This document shows, piece by piece, positions 14,042 to 64,000 of a DNA stretch of 64,000 nt. The notes beneath the pieces were generated by a model that was not told the origin of the DNA, did no database searches, and saw nothing but the letters and a program-made list of their open reading frames with translations. The translations under genes were made by a program, and so were the position numbers. How positions within the stretch are numbered: the stretch's first letter is position 1; each line of letters begins with the position of its first letter. Origin of the DNA: Takakia lepidozioides (taxonomy: Eukaryota; Plantae; Bryophyta); assembly GCA_030704615.1 (NCBI GenBank), contig CM060734.1:10106001-10170000 (forward strand). Direction: 5' to 3'.

Positions 14042-15288
14042 TAGTACCTCCAGGGCTCAACAGTCTATCAGGGCTCAACAGTGGCAAAGCTTCTCAGGCC
14101 TTCAATCTTGTGTCACCTGTGGTCATTTGATGCTTTACTTAGCCTACTTCGACGTCGAATTTCTGTCCATTGCTGTATACCGAGTGAGTTTGCAAGTCAC
14201 GAGTCACCCACACTACAATCATACCTGACTACTAAGTTGAGGCGTACATGCAGATTGCTCAATGCAGAGAATATCCATGTGTTCTTTGATCATTTCATAT
14301 CAGTGTCAGCCACCGGGGCAGGCTGGCATCGCGCAACTTCACACATACAAGAAGGTGCGGACAGTTGCACAACCCGGCGCTTAGAATTGAGTCCGCAATC
14401 GCCTACTCAATACATGATTCGACTATGAGAGTGAGAGGAGATAGGTCTCTTTTAGGCTCTTGAATAAGCTAGAAAAATCTCAGAATGAAGGTAGAATTGT
14501 CAGCATGAGCATTCATGCAAACAGCGCAATGCCTGCAAATCACAGGCTGCTTTTTCACCTACATCTCAAGACAGCGAGGAAAATAACACTCCCCTTACAA
14601 AAAGAAATGTTCAGCCCTTCTCTCACCTCCGATCGGAGTTGTGATATTTGAAAATTGCTTGCTTCTCAGCAATTGTGGCTTTTTCAAAGCAAAAAATTAA
14701 GTGAAACTACATCTGCAATGGTTATGAGAGAAACAACACACACACGCACACAGAGGAGCAAGAGAAAGAAGGAACAGAGAGGAAACCTCGAAGGTCGATG
14801 ACATGGTTCTCAAAACTGTCAGAGTCATAAGTGACAGCCTTCACCTCTGGCGTTTTCCCATTCACAGTTTTCTTATTCCCTTCCTTCTTCCGTAAGCCGT
14901 TCGTCCGCGTTTGCCCAGTCGCCCGCATAGTCACAGAAAAAGAAAGCACCAACCTCCCACCCACGCAAACCCACACACCCCCCCACCCTCCACAGACAGA
15001 CACAGACAAACACACACACGAAAAAAACCAACTACCAAATCACCTCGGAGCACATGCCTGTTGCAGTGATGATGACCACTATCACAGAGTCTGATCGTAG
15101 GACGAATTTAGGAACCTCGGATGCAGAAACTGTGCTGCAGCCTGCGAGAGACGGACAGAGAGAGCCGCTGCTCTCCCTGCCATGCTTTCTTCCTCTGTTA
15201 GGGACTCGGTAGCTTCCTGAGGCACGATTCCATCTGAGCTGTTAGATCTATAAATAATTTTCTTTTCTTCTTCTTTTTTCTTTTTCTT

Positions 15289-20445: not shown

Positions 20446-20646
20446 ATCACAGTCAGTCACAGCTTGACACAGCTTGTCACAGCCTGACACAGCCTGACAC
20501 AGTTTGTCACAGTCTTACACAGCTTGACACAGCCTTACGCAACCTTACATAGCCTATCACAGCCTATCACAGTCAGTCACAGTCTATCACAGTCTATCAC
20601 AGCCCGACACAGCCCGACACAGCTCGGCACAGTCACAGCCCGTCAC
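20446..20646. repeat. Degenerate ~10-bp tandem repeat with (T/G)(C)ACAGC core
   Basis: tcacagctt gacacagctt gtcacagcct gacacagcct ... Confidence 0.85.
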
Positions 20647-21151
20647 AACGTTCACAGGGAACGGTTATCATTGGCAGGGAATGACTGTGTGGGAACGACA
20701 ATTGCAGAGGGAACGTACATTCTGTCTTGGATGACAGTTAGTTAGTTAGCCGGTTAGAACAGCTTGCAGGTAGAATAGGCAGAGTAGCGACATAGAGGGG
20801 TCACTTCTTGAAGATCACTTCTTGGACATCATTGGGGGAGATCAGGCGGAGAGCACGATCTTGGAGCGCAGGGATGGAGATTACACAGAGGAGGAGATAT
20901 GACGAGATGATGCTTGATTCATGCAAGCTGTAGAGATGCACTGTAGAGCAGATTAGAGACACCATGGCTTCGGCCTGATACTTGATAGATATTAATCCGA
21001 TATATATTTCATACTCACACTGTGTAGAGAGACCTGAGTGAAGCTGTGGAATGAATGTTTGGGTAGATGGAACATGGAAGATTGCAGAAGCAATCTGATA
21101 CTTAATCATAGACAATAAGGTAACTTGCTAATATGAATGCGAGAAGGAATA

Positions 21152-21236
21152 TGTCGTGCACATACATATCGCTACACAACTACATCGCTGTCCAAACCAC
21201 ACCACACATATATGCACAATAAAGTAGTCTGCCACA
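21152..21236 (-). repeat. Terminal repeat B2 (85 bp)
   Basis: Direct copy of 21597-21681 with 3 mismatches; TG..CA ends. Confidence 0.95.
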
Positions 21237-21237
21237 A

Positions 21238-21594
21238 TGATAACCAAACTAGAAAAGGACACACACTCTCAACACAAGAAATATGCAATCCCTCAACATC
21301 ACTCTTTAAGATAATAGTCGAGCCAGGGGCACCCCAAGCTATGGGGACTCCACCCCACAACAACCTACACTCCCATCATAAGCACACTCAGATCTGAAGA
21401 ATGCAGGAGCTCGGTCGCGCAGGCTCAACTCGAGAGAGATGAGCCGCGCGACTGCCGCTCTCGTGAAGATAAGACGGACCAGGTGTCAAACTAAACTTGA
21501 CACCTGATTTAACACTTGACCTAAATCCAAGTGTTAAATACAAATAACTAGTTTTATTCTAGCTGTTTTCACACTGTGCTTATTTAACTTGACA
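21238..21594 (-). repeat. Repeat A2 (357 bp)
   Basis: Direct copy of 33171-33526 (about 3 differences). Confidence 0.95.
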
Positions 21595-21596
21595 GC

Positions 21597-21681
21597 TGTC
21601 GTGCACATACCTATTGCTACACAACTACATCGCTGTCCAAACCACACCACATATATATGCACAATAAAGTAGTCTGCCACA
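21597..21681 (-). repeat. Repeat B1 (85 bp), directly after the PPT
   Basis: Joined to A2 by the palindrome GACA-GC-TGTC (21591-21600). Confidence 0.95.
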
Positions 21682-21693
21682 ATCGCCCCCCTA
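21682..21693 (-). promoter_or_regulatory. Polypurine tract
   Basis: Minus strand TAGGGGGGCGAT immediately before the TG of B1. Confidence 0.75.
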
Positions 21694-21941
21694 GCTGGTG
21701 GATAGGTCCCTCTACCTCCAGATAGCTACAAGATGAAATAGCCACAACCGTACTAAGTCCTCTATCACTGTCCCTATTGTACTCAAACTCTATAGACCAA
21801 GAGGCCGGGTACAAGAGTAGCCCCATCGTTAATCGCCGTCTTGCAATCTGTGAACTTGAGCCAGGATCTCGTGTGTTCAAGGTCTCCTAGTAGCTGGGCC
21901 TTGCGTTTCTTGTTAGCCTTCCATGGTTGTATCCACTCCCA

Positions 21942-23200
21942 CTATCCAATGCAATGTGGACATAACCAATCCCCATCTGGAACCATCTCAAGAGGTGGAG
22001 TCAAGCATCCCATATGCCAACCTCTAGAGCATCGATCACACCAGCATGGTGGCTGCCCCTTTAGCAGACCCACACAACATGCACCTCAAACCTGCAGATA
22101 CCACTGCCAGATTTGGGTCAATCCTGCCATCGACATTCGGAAGGTGACATGGCACACAATACGCACATGGTCCTTCCAAGTTATGCCATCCCGACCCTCC
22201 AAGACCAAGACGCCTGAGGGCAAGACCTCTCGAACCCTCAAAATAACACGTCCTGCAGTCACATCCAGGGTCGTAGGAGCAGTCTGCTGCAGATAGACAT
22301 AGTCACCAGGGTTGAATCTCCGAACCCCAGGACGATAGCCCCCACCACGTATGGTAGCATACCTCAACGTATCACGGTGTTGAGCAATGGCAAGGTTCTC
22401 GAAAGCCATGGACATGACTCTCTTGAACAATTCTGCACGCTGCTCACATGCACGTGCCCACACGTCCGGATCGTCAAGGTTAAGAACTGTAGCAGCTTCT
22501 CTACGAATGGATGTAGGCAAATCCGGCTCTCGGCCAAAGAGAAGAAAGTATGGTGAGAAGGAGGCAAGTGATGCTTGCTTGCTGAACCTGTAGCCCATGG
22601 CTAACCAGGGTAACTGAAGGTCCCAATCTCCTAGGTGTCCCTTCTGCAAGCCATACTTACGCAAACCCCTCTTTACTGTCTGAACAACTCTCTCTGCCAA
22701 GCCATCGGCCTCAGGATGATCCCGAGAAGTGGTGCGGTGGTCTATCAAGGCCTTGTCACACAAAGCCTGAAACTCCCCCAAGAACTCTCTCCCTTGGTCC
22801 GTGAGTACCTCAGCTGGAGCACCGAATCGGCTAAGCACACAATCCAGGAATACATACGCAGCTCCCTCACTAGCCTTATCAGGCAATGGAACCAATTCAA
22901 TCCACTTGGAGAAGTGCTCCACCATCACCAACACGTACTTGTTGTGGCGCATGGTCAGTGGCAACGGCCCTGCGAAGTCAAGACTCCACCTGTAGCCCAA
23001 TCCCATGATCGGAAGAGGGTGCAATTGTGGAGTAGGGGCGTTGAATGAAGCACGCACCCTGTCACACACCATGCACCTAGCCACAAATTGTTGTACCTCT
23101 GTGTGCATACCACGCCACCAATATTGCCCCTGCAGTAGACTATGAGTGCGTCGCACCCAAAATGCCCCAACTCCTCATGGGCATGGCGCACTAACCGTGC
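21942..23200 (-). pseudogene. DDE (rve) integrase with C-terminal PHD finger; frameshifted
   Basis: HAHEELGHFG...CMVC zinc finger; WSLDFAG / LTDQGREF / GLAER catalytic triad (ORF 22086..23156). After a shift: CMLC...LV(C)DRCSRGWHMGCLTPPLEMVPDGDWLCPHC* (22083-21942). Confidence 0.9.
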
Positions 23201-23203
23201 CCG

Positions 23204-24900
23204 CTATGTTGGGTGAGGCACAATCCTCACTCGACCATCCTCCCACACTCGGAGCAGGTGTGTCCCCTCCCACCTGAACCTCTTGGCTCGTTGTAGGATC
23301 CGATCCCTCTCCTTGGCAGTCACAGTCGCTGCCGTGTCTCCAGTGCGGAGGTAGTCCAACACAACTGAATCCTCATGTATATCTTTGGCGCTACCTTGCT
23401 CATTGCTGGCCTCAGGGTCCTCACACACTTGATCTACAGCCATCCCTGTTGCAGGTCCAACCTGGCCTTCCGCTGCCAAGATACACAGAAATGCAGATGC
23501 ATGCCATCCGGGCACCATCTCCTCGTCCGTCTCACCATGCCACCGAGCTCCAGTGTCATCATGTTGGCTCGTGCATGGATTGCGACTCAACCCATCTGCA
23601 TTGCGATTGACCAAACCCGGTCGATGCACCACCTGAAAGTCATACTCTTGAAGGATGAGTGCCCACCGTGCAAGCTTCTCCGTAAGCTTGTCTAACTCCA
23701 TCAACCACTTGAGTGGTTGGTGATCCGTGACAAGGGTGAAGAGATTGCCGTATAGATAGCACCTGAAGTGTGCCACGGCCCACACTGCAGCTAAGCATTC
23801 TCCCTCATATGAGCTATACTTAGACTCTGCAGCATTGTTCGAGAGGCTAGCATAAGCCACTACGAACTCTCTTCCCTCATCATCCACCTGTGTGAGCACC
23901 CGCTCCAAGCCCTAGCATGCTCCAATCTGTATGCAGCTGAAAAGGACGCCCCCTGATAGGTCGTCTCAAGATGGGCGCCGAGGTCAACCTCGCCTTGAGC
24001 TCTTGAAAAGCTTGTTCTTGCTCATCTTCCCTCTTCCCACTGCCACTCCTGGTCCACCTTGGTCAGCTTGGTTAGAGCTTTTGCAATGGCACTGAATCCC
24101 TTAACAAACCGTCTGTAATAGTTTGCTAACCCCATGAAAGCTCGAACTCGGCTCACATCCGTGGGGCGTGGAACCTGTGCAATGGACTCTACCTTAGTCT
24201 GCTGTACCCCCAATCCTCCAGGATATATCATGTGACCCAAATACTCAATCTGGTTGTGGAAAAACTTGCACTTGCCCGGATGTAACTTCAATCCGTGCGT
24301 CTTAAGCGCTCAAATACCCCCTGAAAGTGTCTCTCATGCTCCTCCACCGTAGCACTAAGATGATGATGTCATCTATGTAGCACCGAGCAAACTCCACCCC
24401 TGCTAGAATCCTGTCCATGACTCTTTGAAACTCAGCGGGAGCGTTTTTTTAAGCCAAATGGTAAGAACCGCCACTGGTATAGGCAATCCTTCCCGTGCTC
24501 ATTGATCCCCCAGAATGCCGTCTTTTGCTTATCCGCCTCCTTGATCGGCAACTGGTGATATCCGGATCGTAAATCCAACGTGCTAAAGACCTTGGAATGC
24601 CCAATGGCATCAAAGATCTCCTCTGGTGTTGGCATGGCATACTTATCGGACTTGGTCTGACGATTTACAGGCCGGTAATCACCGCACATACGTCTCTCCG
24701 TCCAATTGCCATAGACATCCTTCTTAGCTGGCATCACTGTGGCTGAAACATACTCTCCACCGAGAGCTCCACCAAACCTGCCTCCCAGAGATCTTGAGTC
24801 CTCATCTGAATCAAAGACCTCTCCATGTCACTGTATCTATAGGGTCTCCAAAGATTGGCGTGTCAGTGGCCAACTCAATACGGATCTCTTGACCCTTCAG
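23204..24900 (-). pseudogene. Reverse transcriptase and RNase H; frameshifted
   Basis: RRMCGDYRPVN, LDLRSGYHQ, LPFGLK, CYIDD (~24368-24382), KCKF..EYLGH, FMGLANYYRRF, YEGECLAAVWAV, TDHQPL, NADGLSR. Confidence 0.92.
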
Positions 24901-25369
24901 TGCTCCCAAGTCCTTCAAACTGAAGGCAAAGCAATTCCTATAAGCCCTCAGGAACCGCCGTATACGTCGTCTCTCTCCTCCGGTGACAATGGGTCCAATG
25001 TCAGGCTCCCAATTGTCCTCCGTGACTGCAACCTTAAGTCCAGTGGGCTTAGAGGTAGAGGACGCGTCCCGTGGTTGATATGCTGCAACCTCTTGAGCAG
25101 TACTTCCTTCCTGCTCAGTCAATGACAATGCCTCATCCTGCCCCATCATCTCATCATTGAGAACCTCCTCATCCCGAGAAGAATCCCCAACCTCATCCAT
25201 CACAGCTGCTTTGGCTGCCAACTCCCTCTGAACCTCGACCACCTCCCACGTGTGCCATGGATGTCTACACCCCGTGGTCCTCACCGGCTCGCCCCCACTC
25301 GCTGCCTGTACCGTCTCGGTAGGCAGAGAGACCGTCCAGGGAAGTGCGCTCCGCACTCTACGTTGCTCA

Positions 25370-26330
25370 GCCATAGCCAAGCTGATAATCCAGGTCAAGC
25401 AATTGAGATCCATTGCTTGCCCCAACACCTGCCGACGTGATGCCTCAGAAAGAGAAGGCACCGCCGTGGTCCCAGTGGAAAACCCCATAGCCTGCTCTCG
25501 CTCGTCGGCATTTGGCTCCACTAACTGTTGCAACTGGCTATCCCACAGGAGGCCAGGTCCACCATCCCGAAAAGCATGGGATCCTGGGAAGCTGAGCAGT
25601 GTAGGTAATGCTGCTCGTGGTTGACCCACCCTATTGACCACTGCCAAAGGCGAACGGTCATCGTGTCTCACACGTTGAGACTGCCTCCCTGTGTCCAAAA
25701 TGCCATCCACGGTAAGGTGTGCTGGCCGCTGCACCCCATCAAATGCACGCTTGAGTAGTGCGGGTGGCATCAAGTTAGTCCACCAAAGCCGTGGACGATG
25801 AGTCCGTGACCCCACTGCAGCTGCATCCAGCAACACTGCTGACCCAAGCCACGACCGGACTTGATGCACACTGGCCATCACCCTGGCCCGAGAATCACCC
25901 ATCAGTGGTACATTCTCCAAGATGTATGCTGGAGATACAACTTGATGAAGCTGCAAGCAGCGCAAAATCTGCACCATCTCCCAAAACAGACCCGTCCTTG
26001 AGTCTCGCAATCCATTGCCATGCCCGGCTGATGAATGCCCTTGGCAGGGCCAACCTGCCACTACCAGATCAATGGAGCCAACCTGCTCTAAATCCTGCGC
26101 CCCCAGCAAGAAATGTCTGCTGGCAAGGCTTGTTGGAATCCACGAACTGCAGACACTGGCAACAAGTCAGGGTATTGTTGTACCAACTGAGCAACATGGC
26201 GCAGTGAGACGCGTCGTGCAGTCTCATCCCTCTCCACATACAAGTAACGTCGAACTCGTACACTGCCTGTAGCACATCAGCCAATCCGGTGCTGATCCCG
26301 CCAAACAAGTCCAGAAGGCAATGCCTTCAT
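25370..26330 (-). CDS. DNMT3-like C5 cytosine DNA methyltransferase domain within pol
   Basis: Motif I LDLFGGISTG (~26315-26285); II YLYVE; IV IDLVVAGWPCQG; LFWE; VI ILENV; VIII HRPRLWWTN; IX-X EREQAMGF...RRQVLGQAMD. Motifs IV-X lie in the unbroken ORF 24811..26109, which continues into the RT N-terminus. There are small frameshifts N-terminal of motif IV. Confidence 0.92.
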
Positions 26331-26633
26331 CCGGATACTGCCACACAATAGGTGTGGTATCCATGGTGACAACTGAGGTGGTCCTGGTGCAATACCCGCA
26401 CTCTCCTCCTCTCCTGACGGAACAAAAGCCTCTACCCAGGCTTGTTGCACCCGTCGATCAGCAACCTGCTGCAAATCCTTGCTCGTACCCCACAATGGAG
26501 TGTGAGCAACCCATGGCAGGCAACTCCGCCATACCATGCATGTCATCCTGCTCTGCTGGAGGTGGCACATCCTTTGCATGGGCATTGCCTTCCAGCAACT
26601 CTCCAGGCCAACTAACTGCAGCTGTAAAGGCGG

Positions 26634-27060
26634 CTAGTGTGGCATCTTGCCCCGCTGGGCAGCCGCTATACCCCCAATGAATGTCACAGGGAGCTGTGCA
26701 CGGCGACCATCGCCTGACTGCCATCCAGGCCTGTAGGATGCTGACTCCTCCCAAAAGTCCAGGGTGAAGCCCATGGGGTATAACACTGCCCCACCAACGA
26801 GGACATCGTAAGAGACTGTGTCTGTCACAATGGCATTGGCTCGCATTACTGAGCCATCGATATGATGATCCGGCTGCAGTCTAATGGCCAACTGATGCCG
26901 TGTCATGCCCCGAGCCTGCTCTGATCCTCCCAGAGATGTCTGTATCTGGAAAGGGCAAGGCTCCATATCCGCCTCCATGAGGCCCAAACCTGCAATAGCA
27001 GCTCTGCCCAACATCAGTGGCTGAGCTCCCGAGTCCAACAAGACCCGCAGTGGCCGGTAC
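26634..27060 (-). CDS. Retropepsin aspartic protease
   Basis: VLLDSGAQ active site and YDVLVG motif. Confidence 0.85.
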
Positions 27061-27168
27061 TTCTTGCCTGCCGGTCACTCAAAGTGAAAATGCCTCCCTG
27101 GTTGTCTAACAAGACAACTCCAGGTGTCACCATGGCGCGCTCAAAGGCTGGCCTAGCTGGCAGCTCCG

Positions 27169-29276
27169 TCAACCTGGCAGCTGCAGCTTGCCAGGCGCAG
27201 CCGTGGCAGTCTTGACCCTCAAATCCGAGGATCCCTCTGCCACTATACCTTCCACTAACTCCGCAGAAGATGAAATGACCTCCCCACTCTCATAGAGTGT
27301 TGCTGCTAGTCTGAACACTGCAGCTGGCCTTACCCCCGGCGTGGCAATCATTGTTGCCGAGAACAGTGGGGCCTGACACACAGAGGTGGCTGCCCCCAAT
27401 AACACACCGGCCGCACTAGCCTTGGCAGCAGGAGTCAATGCTGCACGTGTAGCTCTCCCCAATAGCATAGTAACCTCCGCCTCGGGAACAGTCGGGCGAG
27501 AACTAGGTGCCATGGATGGCATCGATACAGTCTCCGCCAATGTGAATGACTGAGGAAGCCTCGCCTGACGGCTTGCCTCCCCACGCCGTGGATCCAATTC
27601 CACCTCTGCACCTCGTGGCTCAGGAACTCGTGCTGCTCCTCGAGTCACGGCTGCAGCAGACTCCACCTGCTCTAGTGGTAGTGCTGCTCCGCACATAAAT
27701 CCCATGTCTCCCATATCTCCTCCCTCAGGAGCAGGAGGTGGACCATCCCGCCTGGGAGCCGGTACCCCCGCCTGAGCTGTAGCCATGGCAGCGAGCCTCT
27801 GCTCTAGCTGCTGAAGCCGGTTGGCCATGCCTTGATCAACATCCTGACTTCCGCGTCCTTGGCCATGTTGAGCTTGCCCTTGGCCTGCACCTCGTGCCCG
27901 ACCAACTCGTCCTCTCTGGGCTGGTCCACCTCGCCCCCGGCCACCATTGTTCCCTTGGAACTGGCCTGGGCGCAACTCAGGATGCAAGTCATAACACTGG
28001 GCATCTCCATGCCCATACTTGCCACGATGCCCACACTGCAACTGTGCAGGCTGTGCTTGTGCCGGCCTTCTGCCACTCTCTGGGCAATCTCTCTTGACAT
28101 GGGGTCCTCCACATGTCCAACATATCACCCCTGGTTGCTGTTGGCCTGCAAAAGATGCCACGGGCCTCTGCACTTGAGGTCCCCTGTAAGCTCCATGGAA
28201 CTTGGGTTGGGAAACCTTGCCCCCCTGACCACGGTGCTGGGCAGTACCTTGTGCCTGTGGGCTGGCAGCTGCGCCTCGTGCAGGCATGTCCTTGCCAAAT
28301 CCAATGGTGACAACTCGCTCCTCCACCATGTTGAGCTCAATCCGCTCAGCCAGCAGAAACACATCTGCTAATGTGGGTTGGGCTGCTTGTAACAAGGTTG
28401 CATCTCGCACCCTTCTCTTGAGCTCCTTGTCCAGAATTCCATACCAAAACTGGATTGCCTGAGCTTCAGTAACCCCTTGGGTCACACTTATCAAGCGCCT
28501 CATACGAGTGTACGCCTCTCGCAGGCTCTCACTGGGTTTGCGCTGAAGTCTTGCAAACTTCGCAGCTTCTCTGTCCGTACACCTTGGTAGTTCCTCCGCA
28601 ACTCCTGGAAGAACTCCACCACCGGGTTGAATCTAGGCACATGTGTTGTAGTAGTGGCAGGAGGAGTAGTAGCACCTTTTGAACTGGTACCACCTACAGA
28701 AGTACCAGCACTACTTGCTCCACTACTAGTGCTGGCAGTAGGAGCTATTGGTACTGATGCAGCTACTGGTCGCGTCGTGCCTCGAGTAATGGAGACGTAG
28801 TCAGGTGACCAATACATCCTCCACTCCTCAATCTCTGCTTCATGTCCTCGCCTGAACTCGTGGTAATCGTCCATAGGCGGGCCTTCCAAATGCTGGAACA
28901 GTCCCTTCCACGCCATGAATGGGGTGAATAGCTGTGGATTGCGCATCTGCTGCAAATCACACCAGCTGTCGAACTCCTGGATAAAGTCATCCAACTCGAT
29001 TGTGCCCACAGCTCCAGAGTACCTACGAGGCCCCTTGGTAGCTCCATACATCTCCTCCATGTCGTCCCACAACAATGGCGAATGAAAGTGCACACCTGTT
29101 GATGAAGCCTCCGAGTCTGTGTCTGACTCTACAGTAATTGAGGGTGGCGGTGAAGGTGGTCTGAACCGAATACCTCGTCTTGTGAACCCACTCTCACTGT
29201 TACTGCCTGTAGCCGTACTCCCCTCAAAACCCTTGGGTAACTCCGTAATGACACTCACAATGTGCACCTCCTCCAC
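27169..29276 (-). pseudogene. Gag (frameshift near 28510)
   Basis: ELDDFIQEFDSW capsid-like region; zinc knuckles CWTCGGPHVKRDC and a degenerate CGHRGKYGHGDAQC. Confidence 0.85.
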
Positions 29277-29795
29277 GTGACACTATAAGGCTCTAGTACT
29301 AATCTAATAGTGACACGGGTGGGCACCTGTTGCAGTCTAAGGGTCATATCCCAATGGCTCAGGGCACCTGCACCTGCATCCACCGCAAGAACTCCTATGG
29401 TTGGCTGGTCATCAACCCAGCCTCACCATAGAAGAAACACTGGTGGTCTTGCTGGTCATCACTCCAGCCTCACCACCGACAGCATACTCTAGGATTGATC
29501 GGTGATCAAATCCGGCCTAATCCCTATGAAAGCAAGCGCCCACACAAAACCAACATGGCGCACAGTCAAGCATGCAGGTGTTGGGGGGGATCCAAACACA
29601 AGAAATCAAAACATCAACACCCCCACACCAAAATCCAGCTGCAATGCTGATCCTGCAGAATATCCCAGCCCAAAACCCCGGACTGACTGGCCTCCACCAA
29701 GAGAGGCTTTGGCAACTACGAGTACAAGGTAATGAAAATAGTACAGAGATGGAGGGGAAGAATAGAAGCCCGCCCAAGCAAGATCTAATCCTGAT

Positions 29796-30545
29796 CTATG
29801 CTATCAACTTCCAGACTTCTCTCAAAGTGCCTCGCTCTGCGTGATGGTAAGGTGTAGGAGGTATATCTATGTCCAGAAACCTGCCACTAACCTTGTCCCA
29901 AGCTACAGTAGCTCGCTCTAACCAACCCTCCTCCTCTTTCTGCCAGGTAGAGACAAAGCAATACTCCCCTATCTCCCGCTCACTGAACACTAAAGAAAAC
30001 AAAGGTAGGGTCTGATAGTCTCTCAACTCGAAAGCTTTGAGACGGTTGCGGGTGTCCTCATTGCGAATGACTGCATCTCCTTCACGCACAACAAACATGT
30101 CATTGCTGATGAACCCCCGCTCGTGGTTGCCCTGTGCAGAGCGTATCCGGCTGCAACCATGTCTGATTGCACAAACTTGTGTAGCTCCTGCTCCTCTGCT
30201 CCAGTACACCACGGCCTTGTGACTGAACACCTTGGTCCCCGGGGCTGTCTTTGGCTGTGTTCCAAGCCTAGCTTTCACCCACTTTGGTATTTCACCTACA
30301 GCTGCAGAACTGCTGGCTCCAACAGAGTTCTGACTGTCCAAGGCGATATTGAGGCCCTCAATGCCAACTACAGCAGTCTGTTGTCTACTGCTAATGCCTG
30401 ACTCCCAGTATGCAATCAACTCGTCCAACTGTTCTCCACTCAAATCAGTCTGAGTTCCTTGGGAAACATAAATCCTGTCCCCTTGTGTGCACAGACTAAG
30501 AGAACAGACCTGCCCTTCAATTACGTCCTCATTTCCCCCAGCCAT
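29796..30545 (-). CDS. Extra 249-aa ORF of unknown function upstream of gag
   Basis: Intact ATG-to-stop ORF on the element's sense strand with globular-protein composition; no motif recognised. Confidence 0.5.
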   Translation of the reverse strand: MAGGNEDVIEGQVCSLSLCTQGDRIYVSQGTQTDLSGEQLDELIAYWESGISSRQQTAVVGIEGLNIALDSQNSVGASSSAAVGEIPKWVKARLGTQPKTAPGTKVFSHKAVVYWSRGAGATQVCAIRHGCSRIRSAQGNHERGFISNDMFVVREGDAVIRNEDTRNRLKAFELRDYQTLPLFSLVFSEREIGEYCFVSTWQKEEEGWLERATVAWDKVSGRFLDIDIPPTPYHHAERGTLREVWKLIA

Positions 30546-30802
30546 GCAAGGAGTACATCCACCAATTTGTCTCTCATATAGACCAGCACAGGTTCTAGAG
30601 ACAGGATTGTGGATCTTTCATGGCACACTCACACTCTAAAAATTCCATAGATTTTTAGCAGAGTCCCCAAAACAGAAACCAGGTTTAGATAGGTAGATTT
30701 CCCCTTTCTGCAGCTATCCCCCCAAAAACTGGGTCAAACAGAGTCCATTTGACAAAGATATGATGAATTTGGCTCCAAATCATTCAAATTAGATTAAAAA
30801 GG

Positions 30803-30842
<40 letters not shown>

Positions 30843-31957
30843 CAAGTTTAAAAATTCAAAGTTACACCCAAAATATCTGGTAACTGGTTCCCGGTTCCCT
30901 AAGTTCTATATGGCATCCTAGGTTCCCTGGCCACGTGCCTGCTGTTCCCCTCCATTTCATTTGAGTTCAACAGCTCACCATGCTTTGGAATCCCAACCGT
31001 CTTCTACCACAAACCGTGGTGACGATGGAGGTCGTGAAGCGATTCTTCCCAGTGAACCCTCGAGAGACGAGTCCCCTGCGCACTTATATACACTCTCTTA
31101 ATAGAGATCAAAATCAGCAAGGAGACACCATTGACGACACCCAGAGATCAGAGACAAGTACTTGCGCAGTTCGGAGGCCACAGCATCCCCTCTGGACACT
31201 GAGCGGGGAATAGCTGCTACACAGCAGCTCAGTCTATCGTCAGCTCCTATACCTACTAGCTTCCTGCCCCTGCCCCTCCTTCTTCACAACAAGATTGACC
31301 GTGGATATGCGGAGAGGTGGTCTACCTGGGATCACCATGAAATTGCACAGATCGGGAATATCTGGTCGGCATCAGCACTATAGTGCCAGGGCACATAAAC
31401 CAGATTGTAGGAACAGCTAGAGGAAATGCAGGTTATGCCAGCATCATCCAGACCATCCCTGCATCTTGGATATGAATCCTCCAGCAGGGGCCGTTGCCTC
31501 CATTGCCCGACACTTGGGTTACATGCTCAGCTAGACCTAATCAGGTCATTTCCGTGACAGATTTCAGCGGCATTCAAATCACTGGCCTCGCTATGCACTG
31601 CTGCCCTCAATCAAACATCCTGCAAAGCTGTCACACACGATGCAAAGCTGGCTGTCTTTCTCTGGCAGATCGCACATAGAATTCTAAAGGTAGGGCGTTG
31701 GCTTCAATTCACCCGTGCACTGCTCTGCTTATGCTGCTCGCTTGGGGTTTCAGAATCTCTGGAACACTGCCTACTGCCATGCAACATACCTTCAAAAATC
31801 TGGCCCAAAATTCACTGGCTGCTCGGACACTGGCATGACCAAACCTCTTTAACTCCAATCAGCCTGCTACTGAATTACGATCCCATCACCAAGCAAAATC
31901 TATCCCAATGCCCAGTTGAGCTGCCAGTCTCGCATTCACTTTCCCCACCAAGGCAGC

Positions 31958-32172
31958 TGCAGTACACTGACTGTCTTAGCTCCCTCCATGACAACCTCCC
32001 GCATTTGGGCAAGTTCAGCTTCACGGACCTCCCAACGACTTAGCAGCTGCTTCAGGTCATGGTCCTAGCTAGCGCATGCTGGGCTGCAACCAGTTGCAGG
32101 TCCTTATCATGTAGAAACCCCTTCACTGCTCTCTTTCCATCTCCTGACGCCATGCTCCATCCTCCAGCCACT
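31958..32172 (-). other. Captured host-gene fragment (copy of ~4345-4563)
   Basis: Reverse complement of the MRC/PII1-like exon segment with few substitutions and one small indel. Confidence 0.9.
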
Positions 32173-33154
32173 TCACTTGTTTCAGGCACCCAGGTCCCTA
32201 TGGGCAGGTCACATGCTCCTGTGCCAGCCAGAACAGTGACATTCGACCCCTTCGTCTTCAGGAACAAGCTGGTAGCTTCCTTGATGTCATCAGTTTCCTG
32301 GACACTTAAACGGCAGTATGGTCGCCACCTCTGATTGAGGCAGTAGTGGTGACGAAAGGAGAAGGGAACACAGGGAAAGAGCGAGGAAAAATAAGGGCGG
32401 AGAACTGCTCATGTCAAAAGGTCAAAGCCAAAGAGGTCGAAACATTGTGCGAAGGGGGACTGTGTTTCTGCTGCCCTCTCCCACTTCAGCGCAACATTCA
32501 GCGTCCAGAGAGTGAAGTCCCTCTTTAAGGTAGACCTCCACGGTAAAGAAGATGAAATGCCCGCCACTTTCTATCAGCTTTCTGTCTTTGCATATGACTC
32601 CTATCCCAAAGTGCAGGCCTGTCGTGCGGACCTCAATCCAGACCAGCTTCCATTCGATCCACTCGCTTCCACCACACAGCTGAAGTCAGCCAGTTCGAGC
32701 CGCATATCAACAGCCTGAACGGGCTGTTCCCCCTGCTGTAGAGATACTCGAGCGACCAAGAGCCGCCACCATCAACCAGACCCTTGCCGCCACAGCCGCT
32801 GGCTCTACCTGGACTCCCATTCACTGCTGCCCCATTCGCTGCTCCCATTCACCGCAGCGGGCTCTATGGGGCCTTGACATCACACCACCAGCTGCCATCG
32901 ACATATCCTCCGCAGACGGGTGACGCCCTTATAGTGGAAGCAGACCTCGCCAATGCCAACAGAAATATGGGCAGACCACCATTACTCTCTCTTCTACCAC
33001 ACCATTGCGACTGAAGATGTGAGACGAACTCAAGCTAGAGCCGTTCTATGCTCATTGCTTGAGCTGCATACAAGACCATGACCATCTATATTATAATAGT
33101 GCTTAAAAAAAACAAAAACATCATATCTAGCTTAGCACTGGAAAACTAGATAGA

Positions 33155-33170
33155 GCTCAACTCTCTCGAG
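33155..33170 (-). promoter_or_regulatory. Self-priming primer-binding site
   Basis: CTCGAGAGAGTTGAGC immediately after A1, complementary (15/16) to 33361-33376 inside A1; no TGG tRNA-type PBS. Confidence 0.7.
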
Positions 33171-33526
33171 TGATAACCAAACTAGAAAAGGACACACACT
33201 CTCAACACAAGAAATATGCAATCCCTCAACATCACTCTTTAAGATAATAGTCGAGCCAGGGGCACCCCAAGCTATGGGGACTCCACCCACAACAACCTAC
33301 ACTCCCATCATAAGCACACTCAGATCTGAAGAATGCAGGAGCTCGGTCGCGCAGGCTCAACTCGAGAGAGATGAGCCGCGCGACTGCCGCTCTCGTGAAG
33401 ATAAGACGGACCAGGTGTCAAACTAAACTTGACACCTGATTTAACACTTGACCTAAATCCAAGTGTTAAATACAAATAACTAGTTTTATTCTAGATGTTT
33501 TCACACTGTGCTGATTTAACTTGACA
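33171..33526 (-). repeat. 5' terminal repeat A1 (356 bp)
   Basis: TGTCAAG...GGTTATCA on the minus strand; copy of A2. Confidence 0.95.
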
Positions 33527-34474
33527 AATACAAATAGGAAGCACCCCCATGATACACTAGCTGTAGGTCATGACTAATTGTTTTGAGCGGGCTGAGTGCT
33601 TAGACATTTCCAACTCTTCTATCTTGGAGTTTCACCTCGGATAGCTAAGGGATGGGTGCATTTGGCGACCATACTGGGGAACTGAGTCAAGAACAACCAA
33701 ATGTGACAGGCATCTGGTGGGATCATGGTAGATGGAGAATCAAAGAATTTGATGTGAATCAAATTCCCTGTGGAACTGAGAAAGAAAAATTGTCCAAACA
33801 ATTCTTTCAGAGGTTCTTGGAATTGCCAGACGGTTGCAAGGAAAACATTCTTAAGAGAGTGCATGATGCTGATCCAGAGTGGGGTCTGGAGAAAGGAGTG
33901 ATAAAGATTTATCAAGTGGCCTGTAGAGGGAGAGCAAGTTGGTTACCAACACTGGTTTATGTGATAGCATTGCTATCCATTAAACGAGTGGAGTTTGAAA
34001 GCTGGGAGGAACGAAAAATAAATGTTTTTACTCCTATGCATGAAGAACTTGTACTGGTAAAGAATTGGATTCCTAAGGATATTTTGTGGATCAAACTTAC
34101 ACCAAGAAGAGCTTTTCAGACGTGCTTGCCATATGGTTATATGGTAACGGAGCCTTCTAGTATAGCCAAGGCCGGTGCATTAAAGCTTGAGCATACGAGA
34201 GACACTACAGAAGAGAGTTTTGATTATTGCCTCATTAAAGATATGAAAGACATGGGACATGAGTGATGAAAGGGAAGCTAGACTCCACAGATATTCAGCG
34301 AAAAGAGAAAGTTATTTGAAAGCTAATTATCCATATCTCTGGGAGAGAGGAATAGACATAGGGGAATCATTTAAACCTCTCACACCATTAAGGCCAGAGA
34401 GTACATCACCCATACCGGAAGAACCAGATTTGGATGCCACTCCTTCTTAATCTTTACAAGAAAGATTAAGGGAT

Positions 34475-37400: not shown

Positions 37401-39960
37401 CCAGGGTCAGTACCAATCAAACAGGCAAGGTACAGGATGAATCCCAACTATGCACAGAAGGTTGGGGATGATATTGTGATAGTTCCCAAGAAGAATGGCA
37501 AACTGAGAGTTTGTGTGAACTATAAGAAGTTGAATGATTGTACAAAGAAAGATCCCTTTCCTTTGCCATTCACAGAAGCTGTACTGGACATTGTGGCAGG
37601 CCATGAGATGTACTCATTCATGGATGGTTTCAGTGGGTATAACCAAGTACAAGTAGCTGAAGATGATCATGGAAAGACAGCTTTCATCACAGACTGGGGT
37701 GCTTATGCATACAAAGTCATGCCTTTTGGACTTTGTAATGCACCAACAACTTTCCAGAGAGTGATAAGTGAATCTTTTCAAGAGTATTTGGATGATTTCA
37801 TGCAAGTGTTCTTAGATGACTTCAGTATGTACAGCTCTAAGAATGAGCACTTGCAGAAGTTGGAGTTATGTTTGGCCAAATGCATGATGAGAGGTCTTGG
37901 TCTAAATCCAGAAAAGTGTACTTTCTGTGTGACCTCAGGGGACACATTGTGTGTAAGAAGGGACTGCTTGTGGATCCTAGAAAGACTGAGGCCATTAAAG
38001 CATCCCCATCAATAAATATTAAGGCTCTAAGAGATTCCTTAGACAAACCAACTACTACAGAAGGTTTATCAAGCGGTATGCACAGATGGCAGCACCATTG
38101 AGCAAGCTTTTGAAGAAGGATGCAGTGTTTGCATGGACAGCTGAATGCCAACAGGCATTTGAGGCACTTATAATGTCAGTAACAACTACACCTGTGTTGA
38201 TTAACCCTCACTGGCATGTGGTATTTCATGTACACTGTGATGCCTCAGGAGAAGCATTGGGGGTTGTGTTAGCCCAAAATGTCACAGGAAACATAGATTC
38301 ACCTGTGTACTATGCTAGCGGATTGTTGAACAGTGCTGAGAGGAACTATAGCACTACTGAAAGAGAAGCTTTGGCAATGATTTATGTAGTCAAGAAATTT
38401 AGTCATTATCTACTGGGAAGGAAGTTTATGTTTTATGTGGATCATCAGGATTTGATTTATCTGGTGAACAAGCCTTTGATAAGTGGCAGGATAGCAAGAT
38501 GGTTGATTATCTTGCACGAGTTTGAATTCGAAGTTGTTTGCAAGTCGGGATGTTTGCATCTTGTGGCAGATCATTTGTCACGCCTTTCAATAGGAGAGCC
38601 CGCCACATGAGTAGACGATCAACTGCCTGATGCCAGTTTATTCGCAGTGGAGGTGCAGGGAGCAGATGATTGGTTGGATTGGCAGTGGCCAATCAGATAC
38701 TACCTTACTCATGGTCAGTGCCCACCCAGTTATGGGAAAGAGCAAAGGAAAAGAATAGCTATCAAGGCATTACCATACACTATGATAGGTGGAAGATTGT
38801 ATAAGCTAGGACCTGATGGAGTTCTTAAATGATGCTTGTACCACCATGAGGTAAATAAAGTTTTGGAAGAAGTTCATAAAGGAGTGGCTGGCGGTCATTT
38901 TGGAGAAGAGACTACCAGTAGGAAAATACTACTTGCAGGTTACTGGTGGCCTACTTTATTCAAGGATGTACACAAGTTTTGCAAGAATTGTGATGAGTGT
39001 CAGAGGCTAGGACCTTTGCAAAGATCTGGGAAGATGGCTTTGCATCCTATGATGCCTACTGAACCATTCCAGAAATGGGGATTAGACTTTGTTGGACCAA
39101 TTAATCCACCAGCCAGGAATACACAGAACAAGTATATAATCACAGCCACTGATTATACCACAAAATGGGTGGAAGCTAAGGCTCTGAGGGACAACACAGC
39201 TAAGTCCACATCAAGGTTTCTATATGAGAACATTCTCACAAGATTTGGCTGTCCCCTGGAATTTATCAGTGACCAGGGAAGTCATTTCATTAATGAGACC
39301 ATTGAACTATTGACTAAGGAGTTTATGATTGTGCATAGGAAGAGTGCAACCTATTACCCACAGGGCAATGGGCAGGCAGAGGCCACCAACAAAATACTAT
39401 GCACTATTTTGGCTAAGATAGTCAATGCAAACAGGACAGACTGGGATACAAAGCTGTTGACAGCTTTGTGGTCATACATGACTTCATATAAAGTCACCAC
39501 CAAGTATACACCATTCCAATTAGTTTATGGTATGGAAGCTTTACTTCCAGTGGAATTCTTATTACATACCATGAGAGCTGGATGGGGAAGGAGAATGGAA
39601 TTGGAGGATTCAATTAAAGTAAGGAAACATGAATTATATCATGTGGAAGAAGTACGTGCTGATGCAGTAGATAACATGACCAGAATTCAGATGAAGAGGA
39701 AAGATCAGTTTGATGAAGGTAAATTGAAGACTTTTAAGACGGGTGATTTGGTACTGTGGTTGCCGAAGAAGGGAAAGGTTAAAGCTTCTAAGCTTAAGTC
39801 ACCATGGAAATGACCTTATATCATACAGAAGATGTATGATAACAACACAACTATATTACAAACCATTAACAAAGAGATGCTTGGTAGAGTCAATGCCAAT
39901 AAGTTGAAGGGATACAGTGGTATCCATGATAGACCATTGCAGCATGATTTGCATCTTGAA
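34475..39960 (+). pseudogene. gag-pol with stops and frameshifts
   Basis: gag LFPCSLIKKASEWY and CX2CX4HX4C knuckles; PR LIDGGSGVN; RT DGFSGYNQ, MPFGL, FLDD; RH CDASG, TEREAL; INT GGHFG..CDEC, WGLDFVG, SDQGSHF, NGQAE. Confidence 0.92.
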
Positions 39961-60897: not shown

Positions 60898-63800
60898 TGT
60901 CAAGTTATTTTACCACTAGTGTGAAACTAGCTAGGAAATAGCTAGCTTTTACATATTGACATTTGGGATTGGCCCAAGTGTCAATCCAGGGGTCAAGGCA
61001 GATTTAGGCCCTGGAGTGGTTATCTTCACGGCAAGCGCGGAAGGCTCATCTTTCTCGAGTTGAGCCTCACCGCGCCTAGCTATGGCGCCGTAGTGTGGAT
61101 TCCCCATGGCGTGGGGTGTACTTGGCTTGACTTGTATTTGAGTGATGAGGTTATATATGCATGAGTTTATGCTTCAGCTTTGTGAGTTCGCATGAGCTTG
61201 TGCTTGTATTCTTCTTCTTTATCACTCGAGAAAGATCAGCTCGTATCTATGAGTGCTAGATACGAGTTAGTTGTAGCACTTGTGGTTTTTGCTTGAGAAT
61301 GAGAGAAACCAAGTTGTTATGCAAGGAGCACCGTGGAGCTCTTGGTTGTTAGAAGCGGAGGCGATGTGGGTTACGAGGTGGTAAACCTTGGCATTCGATC
61401 TTCAGCTTCAGAGATGAAAGCACCATACTGCAGGTAATTCCAGAGCACCTTGATGGTTTCAGATTGTGTACATGCATGAGCAAGCACGATGGGAAGAGGA
61501 CCAGTCAAGAGCAGGTTATAGTGGCTTTGGTGGCAAAGCTGAGAACTGGACTTGGGAATGCGAGCTTTCATTGTGTGAAGGATTGCAGGACCAAGCGAAA
61601 GGGCTGATTTGGCTTGGGGCAAATCAGTGCACTTTGTGGAGTATGGTGAGATTGGGGTTTCAATCTCGAGCTTCAGCATTGAGAGGGCTCTTGTCATGGC
61701 GAGAGCAGGGCTGGAACAGGAGCTAAGAGAAGTGTCTTGTGGCTGAAAATGTAAGCCTTAAGGTTTCAGGAGCTTGGCAAAGGCTGTGGAGTGCTTAGTC
61801 TTGTCTTAGAGAGCATCAAGGAACCAAGGAGCCAAGATAGGGGGCTGATATCTCTTGTGTGAAGAGTTGCATGTGTGGAGCATGCTATCAGCCTGGTGAA
61901 GGCTTGCACTTTCAGGTGTGGGAGTGCAAGAAAGGAAGGAAGGGGCTGGTTTCCCTGTAGGGCATGTGGAGCATGCTTTCAGCCTGCTGAAGCTTGTATT
62001 TTCAGGTTTGTGGGTGCAAGAAATGAAGCAAAGGAGTGATTCTCTTATGGTGAGAGTAGGGCATGTGTGGAGAATGCCTTCAGCCCATTGAGGCTCTTGT
62101 TTTCAAGCTTTAGAGAGCTAGAACGGAAGTCTAGGGCTGGTTTCCACTTGGAGTGAAAGAAAAGCACTTGTAGGGCCTATGTGAGTTGGGGTTTCAACTT
62201 CAAGCTTGAAGGGAGCGCAACTTTGAAGCAGCAGGTGTAGGGGGCTGGAATAGGCTCTAAGACAGATGCTATGGCCAAGGAGAGTGCTTGAATGAGTGCT
62301 CACAAGGGCTGGGAACCAGCAGGGCTTGGTTGTTTGCCATTGAGTTTAGTGGCGTGTTGGGAGGCTAAGTGAGAAAGAAGGCTTGGTTTGTGGCAACCAC
62401 CTCATGGCTTAGGGCTACTATGGTGGTGTGTGCCGAAAGAGCAAGAATACCTTGCTGATTTCCTCACAGCCGCCATAGCTCAATGGAAAGAAGCCTAGAG
62501 TCCAAGAGACACAAACCTGATTGGCGTGGCTAAACCCTTGGAAGAAATGGCTAAATTGCCAGAGCGGCCATGGATGGGGCTGTGATGGGCTGTGAGGGGC
62601 GTGACAGGCGTGCTAAGGCCTTTGAGGCATATGAGGCTGTGAGGGGCTGTGACAGGCTGTGCCCATGGCCTTTGGGGCTGTGATGGGCTGTGAGGGGCTG
62701 TGACAGGTGCCGTGCCTGAAGGCCTTTGAGGCTGTGAGGGGCTGTGAGGGATGTGACAGTGCCTGTGCCTGAGGCCTGTGGGGCTGTGAGGGGCTGTGAG
62801 GGGGACTGTGTTGTAGCAACCGTGCCTTGAGGGGCTGTGGTGGCTGTGACGGGCTGTGACAGGCTTGTGTGCCAGTGGCCTGTGGGGCTGTGAAGGGCTG
62901 TGACAGGCTGTGGCCCATGGCCTTGGGGCTGTGATGGGCTGTGAGGGGCTGTGACAGGCCGTGCCTGAGGCCTTTGATGCTGTGACGGGGATGTGACGGG
63001 ATGTGACGGGCTGTGCCCATGGCCTTTGGGGCTGTGATGGGCTTGTGAGGGGCCGTGACAGGCCGTGGCTGAGGCTTTGAGGCTGTGCAGGCTGTGAGGG
63101 GCTGTGACAGGCCGTGCTGAGGCCTTTGGGGCTGTGAGGGGCTGTGAGGGCTGTGTCAGGCCGTGCCCTGAGGCCTGTGGGGCTGTGATGTGTGTGTGTG
63201 TTCTGGGCTGTGGACTGTGACGGCTGTGGTGAGCTGTGTGGGCCTGTGCTGGTCTGTGGTGGCCCGTGTTGACCTGGGGGCCTGTGCTGACTCGTGGAGG
63301 CACTGGTGGACTGCCTAAGGACTGGCATGTGGTCTGGAAGGCCGAATTTTGAAGCTCGTGGAGGGCGGTTTGAGGAGTATCTTCATGATATTCCCATGGT
63401 CATGCAAGTGAGGGAGAGAGGAGAGGAAGAGTGTTGGGATGAGGGCATGCTGGGGTTAGGCATTGCTTTAGCTTCTCTTCCTCGTAGTTTCCACCCTCTC
63501 ATTAGGCCAAGACCTTTCCGTAGGTGGAGGCAAGAGTCAGTCCGGGTTTGGGCTGGGGTGTCCTTGCAGAGCAACACCGTGGAGTTGTTTTTGGTGTGGG
63601 GGAGTTGTCGTTCTGATTTCTTGTGTTTGGATCCCCTCCATACCTGCATGCTTGACTGTGCGCCATGCTAGTTTTGTGTGGGCGCTTGTTTTATAGGTGA
63701 TTGGTCCGGATTTGATCACCGGCCAGTCCTAGAGCATGCTGTCGATGGTGAGGCTGGGGTGATGACCAGCCAGACCATCATTGTTCTCCTGTGGTGAGGT

Positions 63801-64000
63801 TGGAGGTGATGACCAGCCAACCATAGGAGTGCTTGCGGTGGATGCAGGTACAGGTGTAGCTATGTTAGGAACTTAGTATTCCAAACCATAAGCCGCAACA
63901 GGTTCTCTACCCGGTTACCTTGTGGAGAGGGGTTTAGGGACATGTTCATGACCGGTTGAGTGTCAACACGGAGGTGCCACTAGTTGCTGGGGACAGTGCC
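60898..64000 (+). mobile_element. 5' part of a second, diverged member of the split-repeat element family
   Basis: A-like repeat TGTCAAG..TTTATCA (60898-61224), PBS CTCGAGAAAGATCAGC (61225-61240), and ~63500-63860 matching the reverse complement of ~29360-29720 (pre-gag leader). Confidence 0.85.
62575..63290. repeat. GGCTGTGA-core degenerate tandem repeat in the element leader
   Basis: Many copies of gggctgtga(g/c/t); this explains the spurious P/S/T/H/Q-rich ORFs here. Confidence 0.9.

Follow-up and report, generated by a model that had tools for sequence, protein, structure and literature searches.

Split direct repeats in the order A1..B1-A2-B2, where the junction of B1 and A2 consists of the element's own two ends joined together, are the hallmark of retroelements of the DIRS order such as PAT, Ngaro and TOC, which use a tyrosine recombinase and make no target duplication (PMC4157794). 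Repeats described as DIRS-like have also been reported for an element with Gypsy domains, KnitGypsy-Dnmt3 of the green alga Klebsormidium nitens, in which a Dnmt3-like DNA methyltransferase (DNMT) lies upstream of the reverse transcriptase (RT) (de Mendoza et al. 2018, PMC5890265, legend to Fig. 4c). That paper gives no termini, target-site duplication (TSD), palindrome, primer binding site (PBS) or mechanism for KnitGypsy-Dnmt3, and presents the acquisition as an event confined to K. nitens. Here we describe an element, e1, with the same repeats, domains and DNMT position in a bryophyte. It lies on the minus strand of a 64,000-nucleotide stretch of Takakia lepidozioides DNA (assembly GCA_030704615.1, contig CM060734.1, positions 10,106,001 to 10,170,000), which as a whole we call the window. 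While e1 shares its split repeats and the make-up of its B1-A2 junction with PAT, Ngaro and TOC, it differs from them in encoding an rve integrase and a Ty3-like RT, and in having TG..CA ends and a 4-bp TSD. We show that A..B-A-B, in full TSD-A-PBS..polypurine tract (PPT)-B-GC-A-B-TSD, is the canonical inserted form of the lineage to which e1 belongs.

Three further systems bear on this locus. Ty3 (Metaviridae) has a homologous RT-RNase H-integrase region, TG..CA ends and a short TSD, but it has two identical long terminal repeats (LTRs) and a tRNA primer, and neither a DNMT nor a PHD finger. By its RT-RNase H-integrase order, Ty3-like RT, rve integrase, TG..CA termini and short TSD, e1 is of the Ty3/gypsy type; what it lacks is a complete, identical LTR at each end of the insertion. 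In Tf1/sushi elements, and by prediction in the plant Tcn1 clade (Neumann et al., PMC6317226), the PBS is complementary not to a tRNA but to the 5' end of the RNA that the element itself produces, as we also predict for e1, although those elements have ordinary LTRs and a chromodomain where e1 and its relatives have permuted repeats and a PHD finger. Finally, prototype foamy virus (PFV) and HIV-1 integrases cleave the palindrome that the two att ends form at a 2-LTR junction (..CA nn TG..), giving 3'-processed ends (PMC1180852, PMC1905944, PMC4372172). In retroviruses this palindrome exists only at the circle junction and cutting it restores the ordinary linear genome, whereas in the e1 lineage it lies inside every LTR, so that the integrated copy is circularly permuted.

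Repeat comparison of e1, read along the minus strand from 33526 to 21152, gave the order AATA / A1 / PBS ... PPT / B1-GC-A2-B2 / AATA (Table 1), with termini TGTC..GACA, AATA on both flanks and about 11.5 kb between PBS and PPT. The 5' end is A alone and the 3' end is B-GC-A-B, a full B-GC-A unit being present at the 3' side only. A1 and A2 (356 nt) differ by 2 substitutions and 1 indel (99% identity), and B1 and B2 (87 nt) by 3 substitutions (97%). The layout, the ends, the AATA duplication and the GACA-GC-TGTC palindrome proposed in the initial annotation of this window are thereby confirmed. Its repeat positions also hold, but the extra T that it placed between A2 and B2 reflects a choice of boundary: with B begun after the conserved GGGGGGCG and A ended before the 11-nt PBS, A2 abuts B2 directly with no spare T, B is 87 nt and A is 355/356 nt.

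Relatives were found with the open reading frame (ORF) of e1 that encodes the DNMT, from bryophyte matches whose surrounding loci were examined, and by one metagenome scan; the resulting sample is about 14 copies, most of them decayed. Seven insertions, from five assemblies, are complete, and all seven carry a distinct matching 4-bp duplication just outside TGTC..GACA. The A..B-A-B form is found in e1 (AATA), in Calypogeia (L003, AATG), in Sphagnum troendelagicum (L004, ATTC) and in Marchantia polymorpha Tak-1 (L131, GGTT; A repeats 99% and B repeats 100% identical). A second Calypogeia copy (L001, AGGT) has one extra unit, A..B-A-B-A-B, while L129 (AATT) and a Sphagnum jensenii copy (L130, TTAC) are A..B. 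The chance probability of each 4-bp match is about 0.4-0.5%, and replicate insertions with differing TSDs exclude chance as the source of the duplication, a concern that had been raised over the AT-rich AATA of the single copy. Across copies B is 87-114 nt and A is 296-398 nt.

Copies readable at one end agree with this picture. B-A-B followed by flank forms the 3' end in Riccia (L005) and in two metagenome contigs (L035 and L056), while in L011 flank is followed by A at the 5' end and the contig stops at the 3' side after B and part of A. The window itself holds the 5' part of a second, diverged member, e2, cut by the window end, which begins TGTCAAG straight after unrelated flank with no B upstream; its A is ∼70% identical to that of e1, and one internal stretch is 84% identical. 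Altogether, flank/A-PBS was found in 11 of 11 5' ends read, and B-A-B at nine 3' ends. No conventional copy, with B-GC-A at both ends, was seen among the ∼14 copies read. The lineage thus extends to Marchantia, Riccia, Calypogeia and Sphagnum, as well as to many metagenome contigs.

A sceptical reading of e1 taken by itself would be a one-off rearrangement, a nested solo LTR or an assembly artefact of an ordinary LTR element, given that an AT-rich 4-bp duplication in a single copy could be chance. The survey refutes this reading, to which we now give practically no credence: A..B-A-B occurs with different TSDs in chromosome-scale Marchantia, Calypogeia and Sphagnum assemblies, the B-A-B 3' end recurs in Riccia, and a preponderance of conventional B+A copies, which the initial annotation had named as the outcome that would undo its proposal, was not what we found.

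Not every locus retrieved could be used. The metagenome scan, whose query was the 15-nt junction GCACGACAGCTGTCA, returned 120 loci, nearly all of them chance matches; the related ones were L011, L035, L056 and L078 only, and two human-gut metagenome contigs were left out. L002 (Logan run SRR327418), 94% identical to e1, stops a few bases into B1 and is therefore silent on the element ends. L006, from an older Marchantia assembly, has an assembly gap before B that makes its unit number unreadable, and L128 is too diverged for repeats to show. L127 (Calypogeia) was left out of the tally as rearranged: at 12682-14588 its PPT-B-A-B is inverted relative to the 5' part, and beyond it comes one more B, partial and forward-oriented. 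In the metagenome contig L132 (8505-9535), the order is PPT-[B-GC-A][B-GC-A]-PBS-leader, as in a 2-LTR circle or a tandem, with no terminal overlap; we do not count this order as evidence, because a short-read assembler could produce it as a loop path from A..B-A-B copies.

The positions of the PPT and PBS indicate what reverse transcription makes of these repeats. B starts at the first base after the PPT in 7/7 aligned copies, and A ends one base before the PBS; the PPT block ..GGGACCTAnCCACCAGCTAGGGGGGCG is conserved in six of the seven, L132 having a more diverged version. An LTR consisting of A alone, or of A+B, is ruled out by the direct contact of the PPT with B and of the PBS with A. 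We infer that the LTR of reverse transcription is B-GC-A, in which U3 runs from the start of B through GC to ∼155 nt into A, and R-U5 takes up the remainder of A. The suggestion that reverse transcription would yield a B+A LTR, made when the locus was first annotated, is thus upheld by the PPT and PBS positions.

The predicted primer resembles that of Tf1. The PBS directly follows A and its 10-13 nt are the exact reverse complement of a site, X, ∼150-180 nt into A. PBS and X covary, with compensatory changes in seven copies: ACTCGAGAGAG / CTCTCTCGAGT in e1, ACTCGAGAAAGAT / ATCTTTCTCGAGT in e2 (a compensatory change relative to e1), ACTTAGAGAACT / AGTTCTCTAAGT in Calypogeia L001, ACTTGGAGAACT / AGTTCTCCAAGT in Calypogeia L003, ACTCGAAGAACTG / CAGTTCTTCGAGT in Marchantia L131, ACTCAAAGAA / TTCTTTGAGT in L011 and ACTTGACAAGAAT / ATTCTTGTCAAGT in L132. 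All seven also have a TATA-like box 28-34 nt upstream of X. The complementarity together with its covariation makes Tf1-like self-priming probable. A tRNA-type PBS was considered and rejected, since no TGG-initiated PBS follows A and self-complementarity fits better. Two local features of X were also seen: in Marchantia (L131, about 6980-7010) and Calypogeia (L001, about 6995-7025) a copy of the PBS stands in A immediately upstream of X, forming an inverted repeat with it, and in the elements of the window a GGCTCA/TGAGCC hairpin encloses X in its loop.

Two junctions remain to be accounted for. The first is the palindromic B1/GC/A2-type junction, which is also present in Calypogeia, Sphagnum, Riccia, Marchantia and L132; in Calypogeia the spacer is GC twice in one copy and AC in the other. 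The integrated ends, TGTC at the start of A and GACA at the end of B, are the two halves of this palindrome, which lies in the middle of the LTR. The second is the A|B junction, which is exact, with nothing lost or added, in every copy that can be checked on both sides (e1, both junctions of L001, L003, L004 and L131). As placed by the predicted LTR, A2|B2 is an exact join of the U5 end to the U3 start, such as a 2-LTR circle would have, in agreement with the initial annotation; the lost GC, likewise, matches the dinucleotide left by 3' processing by integrase. B1 and B2 are 97-100% identical within a copy and 61-80% identical between lineages, from which it follows that the repeats are remade at every transposition, with B1 and B2 sharing one template. 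The 3'-most ∼45 nt of B (window 21597-21640 on the minus strand; L001 15505-15551) are the best-conserved non-coding stretch of the family. Within it are another GACAGC and a CGATGTATGT-like motif that is repeated, while only TGTCA is conserved at the start of A, making the two integrase-side ends very unequal.

The A..B-A-B inserted form implies that integrase cuts a palindrome inside the repeat. Since the integrated ends are not those that reverse transcriptase would make, an end-joined intermediate with a cut at the internal palindrome is the only simple way to reconcile them, and our best explanation, which we consider slightly more likely than not, is that e1 is a frameshifted copy of a Ty3/gypsy-type streptophyte lineage whose end-joined cDNA is cut in this manner. 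Transcription would start at X inside A, and the first 11-13 nt of the RNA would prime minus-strand synthesis at the PBS, in the manner of Tf1, leading to a linear cDNA with B-GC-A LTRs. Integrase would not use the ends of this cDNA but would instead recognise the LTR-internal 10-bp palindrome GACA|GC|TGTC and, in the PBS-proximal LTR, cleave both of its strands after CA to leave 3'-processed TGTC.. and ..GACA ends with GC 5' overhangs. These two 3'-recessed CA ends, already side by side, would then enter the target, duplicating 4 bp of it. Blunt joining of the reverse-transcription ends would come either before the cut, in the form of a 2-LTR circle, or after strand transfer, by repair of the break; either order would give A..B-A-B with that GC lost. 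That only one LTR is cut could be a matter of timing: the PBS-proximal LTR would be double-stranded through most of plus-strand synthesis, the other remaining single-stranded until the end, so that integrase would engage the early double-stranded palindrome first and end joining would follow. One-LTR or multi-LTR intermediates could be the source of the A..B copies and of L001 with its extra unit, as could later unequal exchange between tandem units.

Several points weigh against this explanation. The circle, the extrachromosomal intermediate and the cleavage by integrase are all deduced from sequence, and the transcription start and poly(A) site are predictions of the same kind. The A..B variants (L129 and L130) and L001 with its extra unit may be alternative integration products or the outcome of later unequal recombination, and the sample is small and mostly decayed. 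The most pointed objection is the absence of the mirror product A-B-A..B. None was found among the 11 5' ends, against nine B-A-B 3' ends, and this distribution (0 vs 9) has p ∼0.002 if both palindromes are used equally. Random opening of a free symmetric circle is thus at odds with the data and would need a strong bias towards one palindrome.

This objection bears most heavily on the literal model of the initial annotation, in which a free, covalently closed 2-LTR circle forms first and integrase then opens either of its identical palindromes at random. Such a model accounts for the exact A|B join, the GC loss and the TSD, it can draw on the retroviral precedent for cleavage of circle junctions, and the order of units in L132 is what such a circle predicts. 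However, a symmetric 2-LTR circle has two identical palindromes, so that A-B-A..B would be expected half the time, as often as A..B-A-B, and the L132 order is also obtainable from a short-read assembly loop on a contig without terminal overlap. We therefore regard random opening as quite unlikely. What survives of the original idea of a circle opened by integrase is that the layout it sought to explain is the family's normal integrated form; the circle itself is conjectural, and of the alternative products that it called for, A..B is present and A-B-A..B was never seen.

A sub-case of our best explanation dispenses with the circle by cutting first and joining later. Here the palindrome of the early double-stranded, PBS-proximal LTR is cut, the short B fragment and the A end are kept in one complex and both inserted into the target, and the break left in the chromosome, with the A end on one side and the B start on the other, is closed either through end joining or by a polymerase that copies the B fragment. 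Such an order of events would offer a reason for the one-sidedness of the product, and it sits well with the size difference between the always short B and the long A and with joins that are exact and blunt. Against it, the scheme is pure conjecture, we know of no precedent for an integrase routinely inserting two separate DNA fragments, and it demands a chromosomal break that is precisely repaired every time. We consider this order of events unlikely, if worth keeping in view.

Another possibility is that the A|B join arises during reverse transcription, the enzyme switching templates end to end and yielding a linear cDNA with tandem LTRs, whose internal TGTC and GACA are then processed by integrase. 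The joins are exact in every copy, as this would predict, and L001 offers a point in its favour: its three A copies show 6, 8 and 10 differences in a star-like pattern, which suggests, small as these numbers are, that insertion and extra unit are of about the same age. Yet either 3' end could switch, leaving one-sidedness unaccounted for by the model itself, and integrases do not usually process sites that lie hundreds of bases inside an end. We judge template switching to be very improbable.

A stronger version of our best explanation is that the lineage integrates only by way of a molecule with joined reverse-transcription ends, its integrase acting as a site-specific cutter of the att palindrome inside the LTR. 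We put the chances of this a little short of even.

For coding content, all e1 ORFs of 80 aa or more, on either strand, were scanned against Pfam, as were the ORFs of intact relatives. The only domains found in e1 were a C5 cytosine methyltransferase, RVT_1, an RT-type RNase H, an H2C2 integrase zinc finger and the rve core (Table 1). The RT-RNase H-integrase polyprotein is Ty3-like (match to 7q5b, E 5.6e-101), the best PDB match of the methyltransferase is DNMT3A, weakly (E 2.8e-4), and the DNMT sits between the protease region and the RT. Because of its several frameshifts, we take e1 to be a dead copy. L132 is apparently intact: its ORF1 (1334 aa) comprises a gag-like region, an aspartic protease (weak match) and the DNMT, and its ORF2 (1043 aa) RT, RNase H, integrase and a C-terminal PHD finger (residues 986-1030), with which the integrase tail of e1 aligns. 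The gene order of the lineage, as predicted from these ORFs, is gag-PR-DNMT / RT-RH-IN-PHD. No chromodomain was found at the integrase C-terminus of L132 ORF2, where the PHD finger stands in its place; intact relatives thus combine two chromatin-related modules in one retrotransposon, a Dnmt3-like DNMT and a PHD finger where chromoviruses have a chromodomain. The initial annotation had overlooked the DNMT, the PHD finger of relatives and the predicted self-priming type of PBS.

These scans also speak to integration of the DIRS/PAT/Ngaro type by a tyrosine recombinase, acting in cis or in trans, which the A1..B1-A2-B2 layout would otherwise bring to mind. No tyrosine recombinase domain (PF00589, Phage_integrase) was found in any scanned ORF of e1 or of the intact relatives, as had been supposed for e1 along with its rve integrase. 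Moreover, the RT and integrase are Ty3-like, and TG..CA ends with a 4-bp duplication, the signature of a DDE integrase, are found in every complete copy. We consider a tyrosine recombinase to have next to no likelihood of being responsible.

Table 1. Positions of e1 and e2 features in the window
Feature	Coordinates	Strand	Basis or remark
TSD, 3'-side copy (AATA)	21148..21151	.	matches 33527-33530
B2, terminal repeat, 87 nt; element 3' end ..GCACGACA	21152..21238	-	97% identical to B1
A2, 356 nt, starts TGTCAAG; X site at 21428-21438, complementary to PBS	21239..21594	-	99% identical to A1
Palindrome GACA-GC-TGTC (GACAGCTGTC, 10 bp), B1 end + GC + A2 start; proposed integrase recognition/cleavage site	21591..21600	.	
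GC between B1 and A2	21595-21596		
B1, 87 nt, directly downstream of PPT	21597..21683	-	repeat comparison
PPT AGGGGGGCG, closing the conserved block ..GGGACCTAnCCACCAGCTAGGGGGGCG	21684..21692	-	kept in 6/7 aligned copies
Integrase (H2C2 zinc finger + rve core) and C-terminal tail	21951..23171	-	PF17921, PF00665; aligns to L132 ORF2 residues 624-1030
RNase H and connection region	23156..23911	-	PF17917, E 4e-28; L132 alignment
Reverse transcriptase, frameshift-broken	23913..24755	-	PF00078; L132-aligned pieces in frames -3 and -2
C5 cytosine DNA methyltransferase (Dnmt3-like), within ORF 24814-26109	25342..26109	-	PF00145, E 1.7e-11
Protease-region homologue	26109..27053	-	aligns to L132 ORF1 residues 701-1002 (weak Asp_protease_2 match there)
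Gag-like region, frameshifted	27196..29024	-	aligns to L132 ORF1 residues 69-630; no Pfam match
Leader, ∼4 kb, without recognisable ORF	29025..33160	-	ORF and Pfam scans
PBS ACTCGAGAGAG, 11 nt, complementary to X (CTCTCTCGAGT) inside A	33161..33171	-	
A1, 355 nt, sole 5'-end repeat; X at 33360-33370; TATA-like TTATCT ∼34 nt upstream of X	33172..33526	-	
TSD, 5'-side copy (AATA)	33527..33530	.	matches 21148-21151
e2, second diverged member, 5' part, cut by window end	60898..64000	+	A 60898-61223, PBS 61224-61236

The leader between PBS and gag is unusually long (3-4 kb) and without a recognisable ORF, both in e1 and in Marchantia (L131 7135-10000). A 226-bp piece of the e1 leader (31958-32179) recurs at window 4338-4563 (minus strand) with 93% identity; a separate small repeat may lie in the leader or be shared by it. 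About 500 bp off the 3' end of e1 lies a run of repeats with a 10-bp period (CACAGnnnnn-like, window 20500-20641). The window is transposon-rich, with other Ty3/gypsy-type pol remnants at 37506-39549 (+), 55006-57309 (+) and 45109-45512 (-) that are only distantly related, at ∼26-44% identity in aligned segments.

The relationship of e1 to the algal element is one of homology as well as layout. The e1 integrase is 58% identical over 315 aa (E 3e-113) to KFL_009030040, a K. nitens protein that combines DNMT, RT, RNase H and integrase domains, and the stretch from DNMT to RT is collinear and 35% identical over 425 aa (E 5e-61). From its domains we assume KFL_009030040 to be one of the published KnitGypsy-Dnmt3 copies, and this homology makes e1 a bryophyte member of the KnitGypsy-Dnmt3 lineage. 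The bryophyte elements differ from the published one in their hosts and, in L132, in having the DNMT end ORF1, the RT begin ORF2 and a PHD finger follow the integrase. Our literature search found no other paper mentioning KnitGypsy-Dnmt3, and nothing on bryophyte members, termini, TSD, internal palindrome, U5|U3 join, self-priming PBS, PHD finger or mechanism. The initial annotation was therefore wrong in knowing of no Ty3/gypsy family with this layout: the layout is already published for a green alga, while its mechanistic implication is new and testable.

Our conclusion is that the split-repeat layout is not tied to tyrosine recombinases, and that the gypsy lineage with a methyltransferase is no peculiarity of Klebsormidium but occurs across charophytes and bryophytes. 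LTR finders would take A1 and A2 as the pair, place B2 beyond the element and overlook the TSD, so that these elements, including those of the model plant Marchantia polymorpha, would be mis-bounded or discarded. In this lineage, reverse transcriptase makes one pair of ends and integrase uses another. A 'circle-junction' route of integration was proposed for retroviruses in the 1980s and later set aside; if integration by way of joined ends alone is true of this lineage, it would be a natural, obligate version of that route, and an integrase-based parallel to the strategy of DIRS and Ngaro elements. Given that the Marchantia copy L131 is young, with near-identical repeats and an intact ORF1 of 1278 aa, routine DDE integration from a circle-type junction is testable in a tractable organism.

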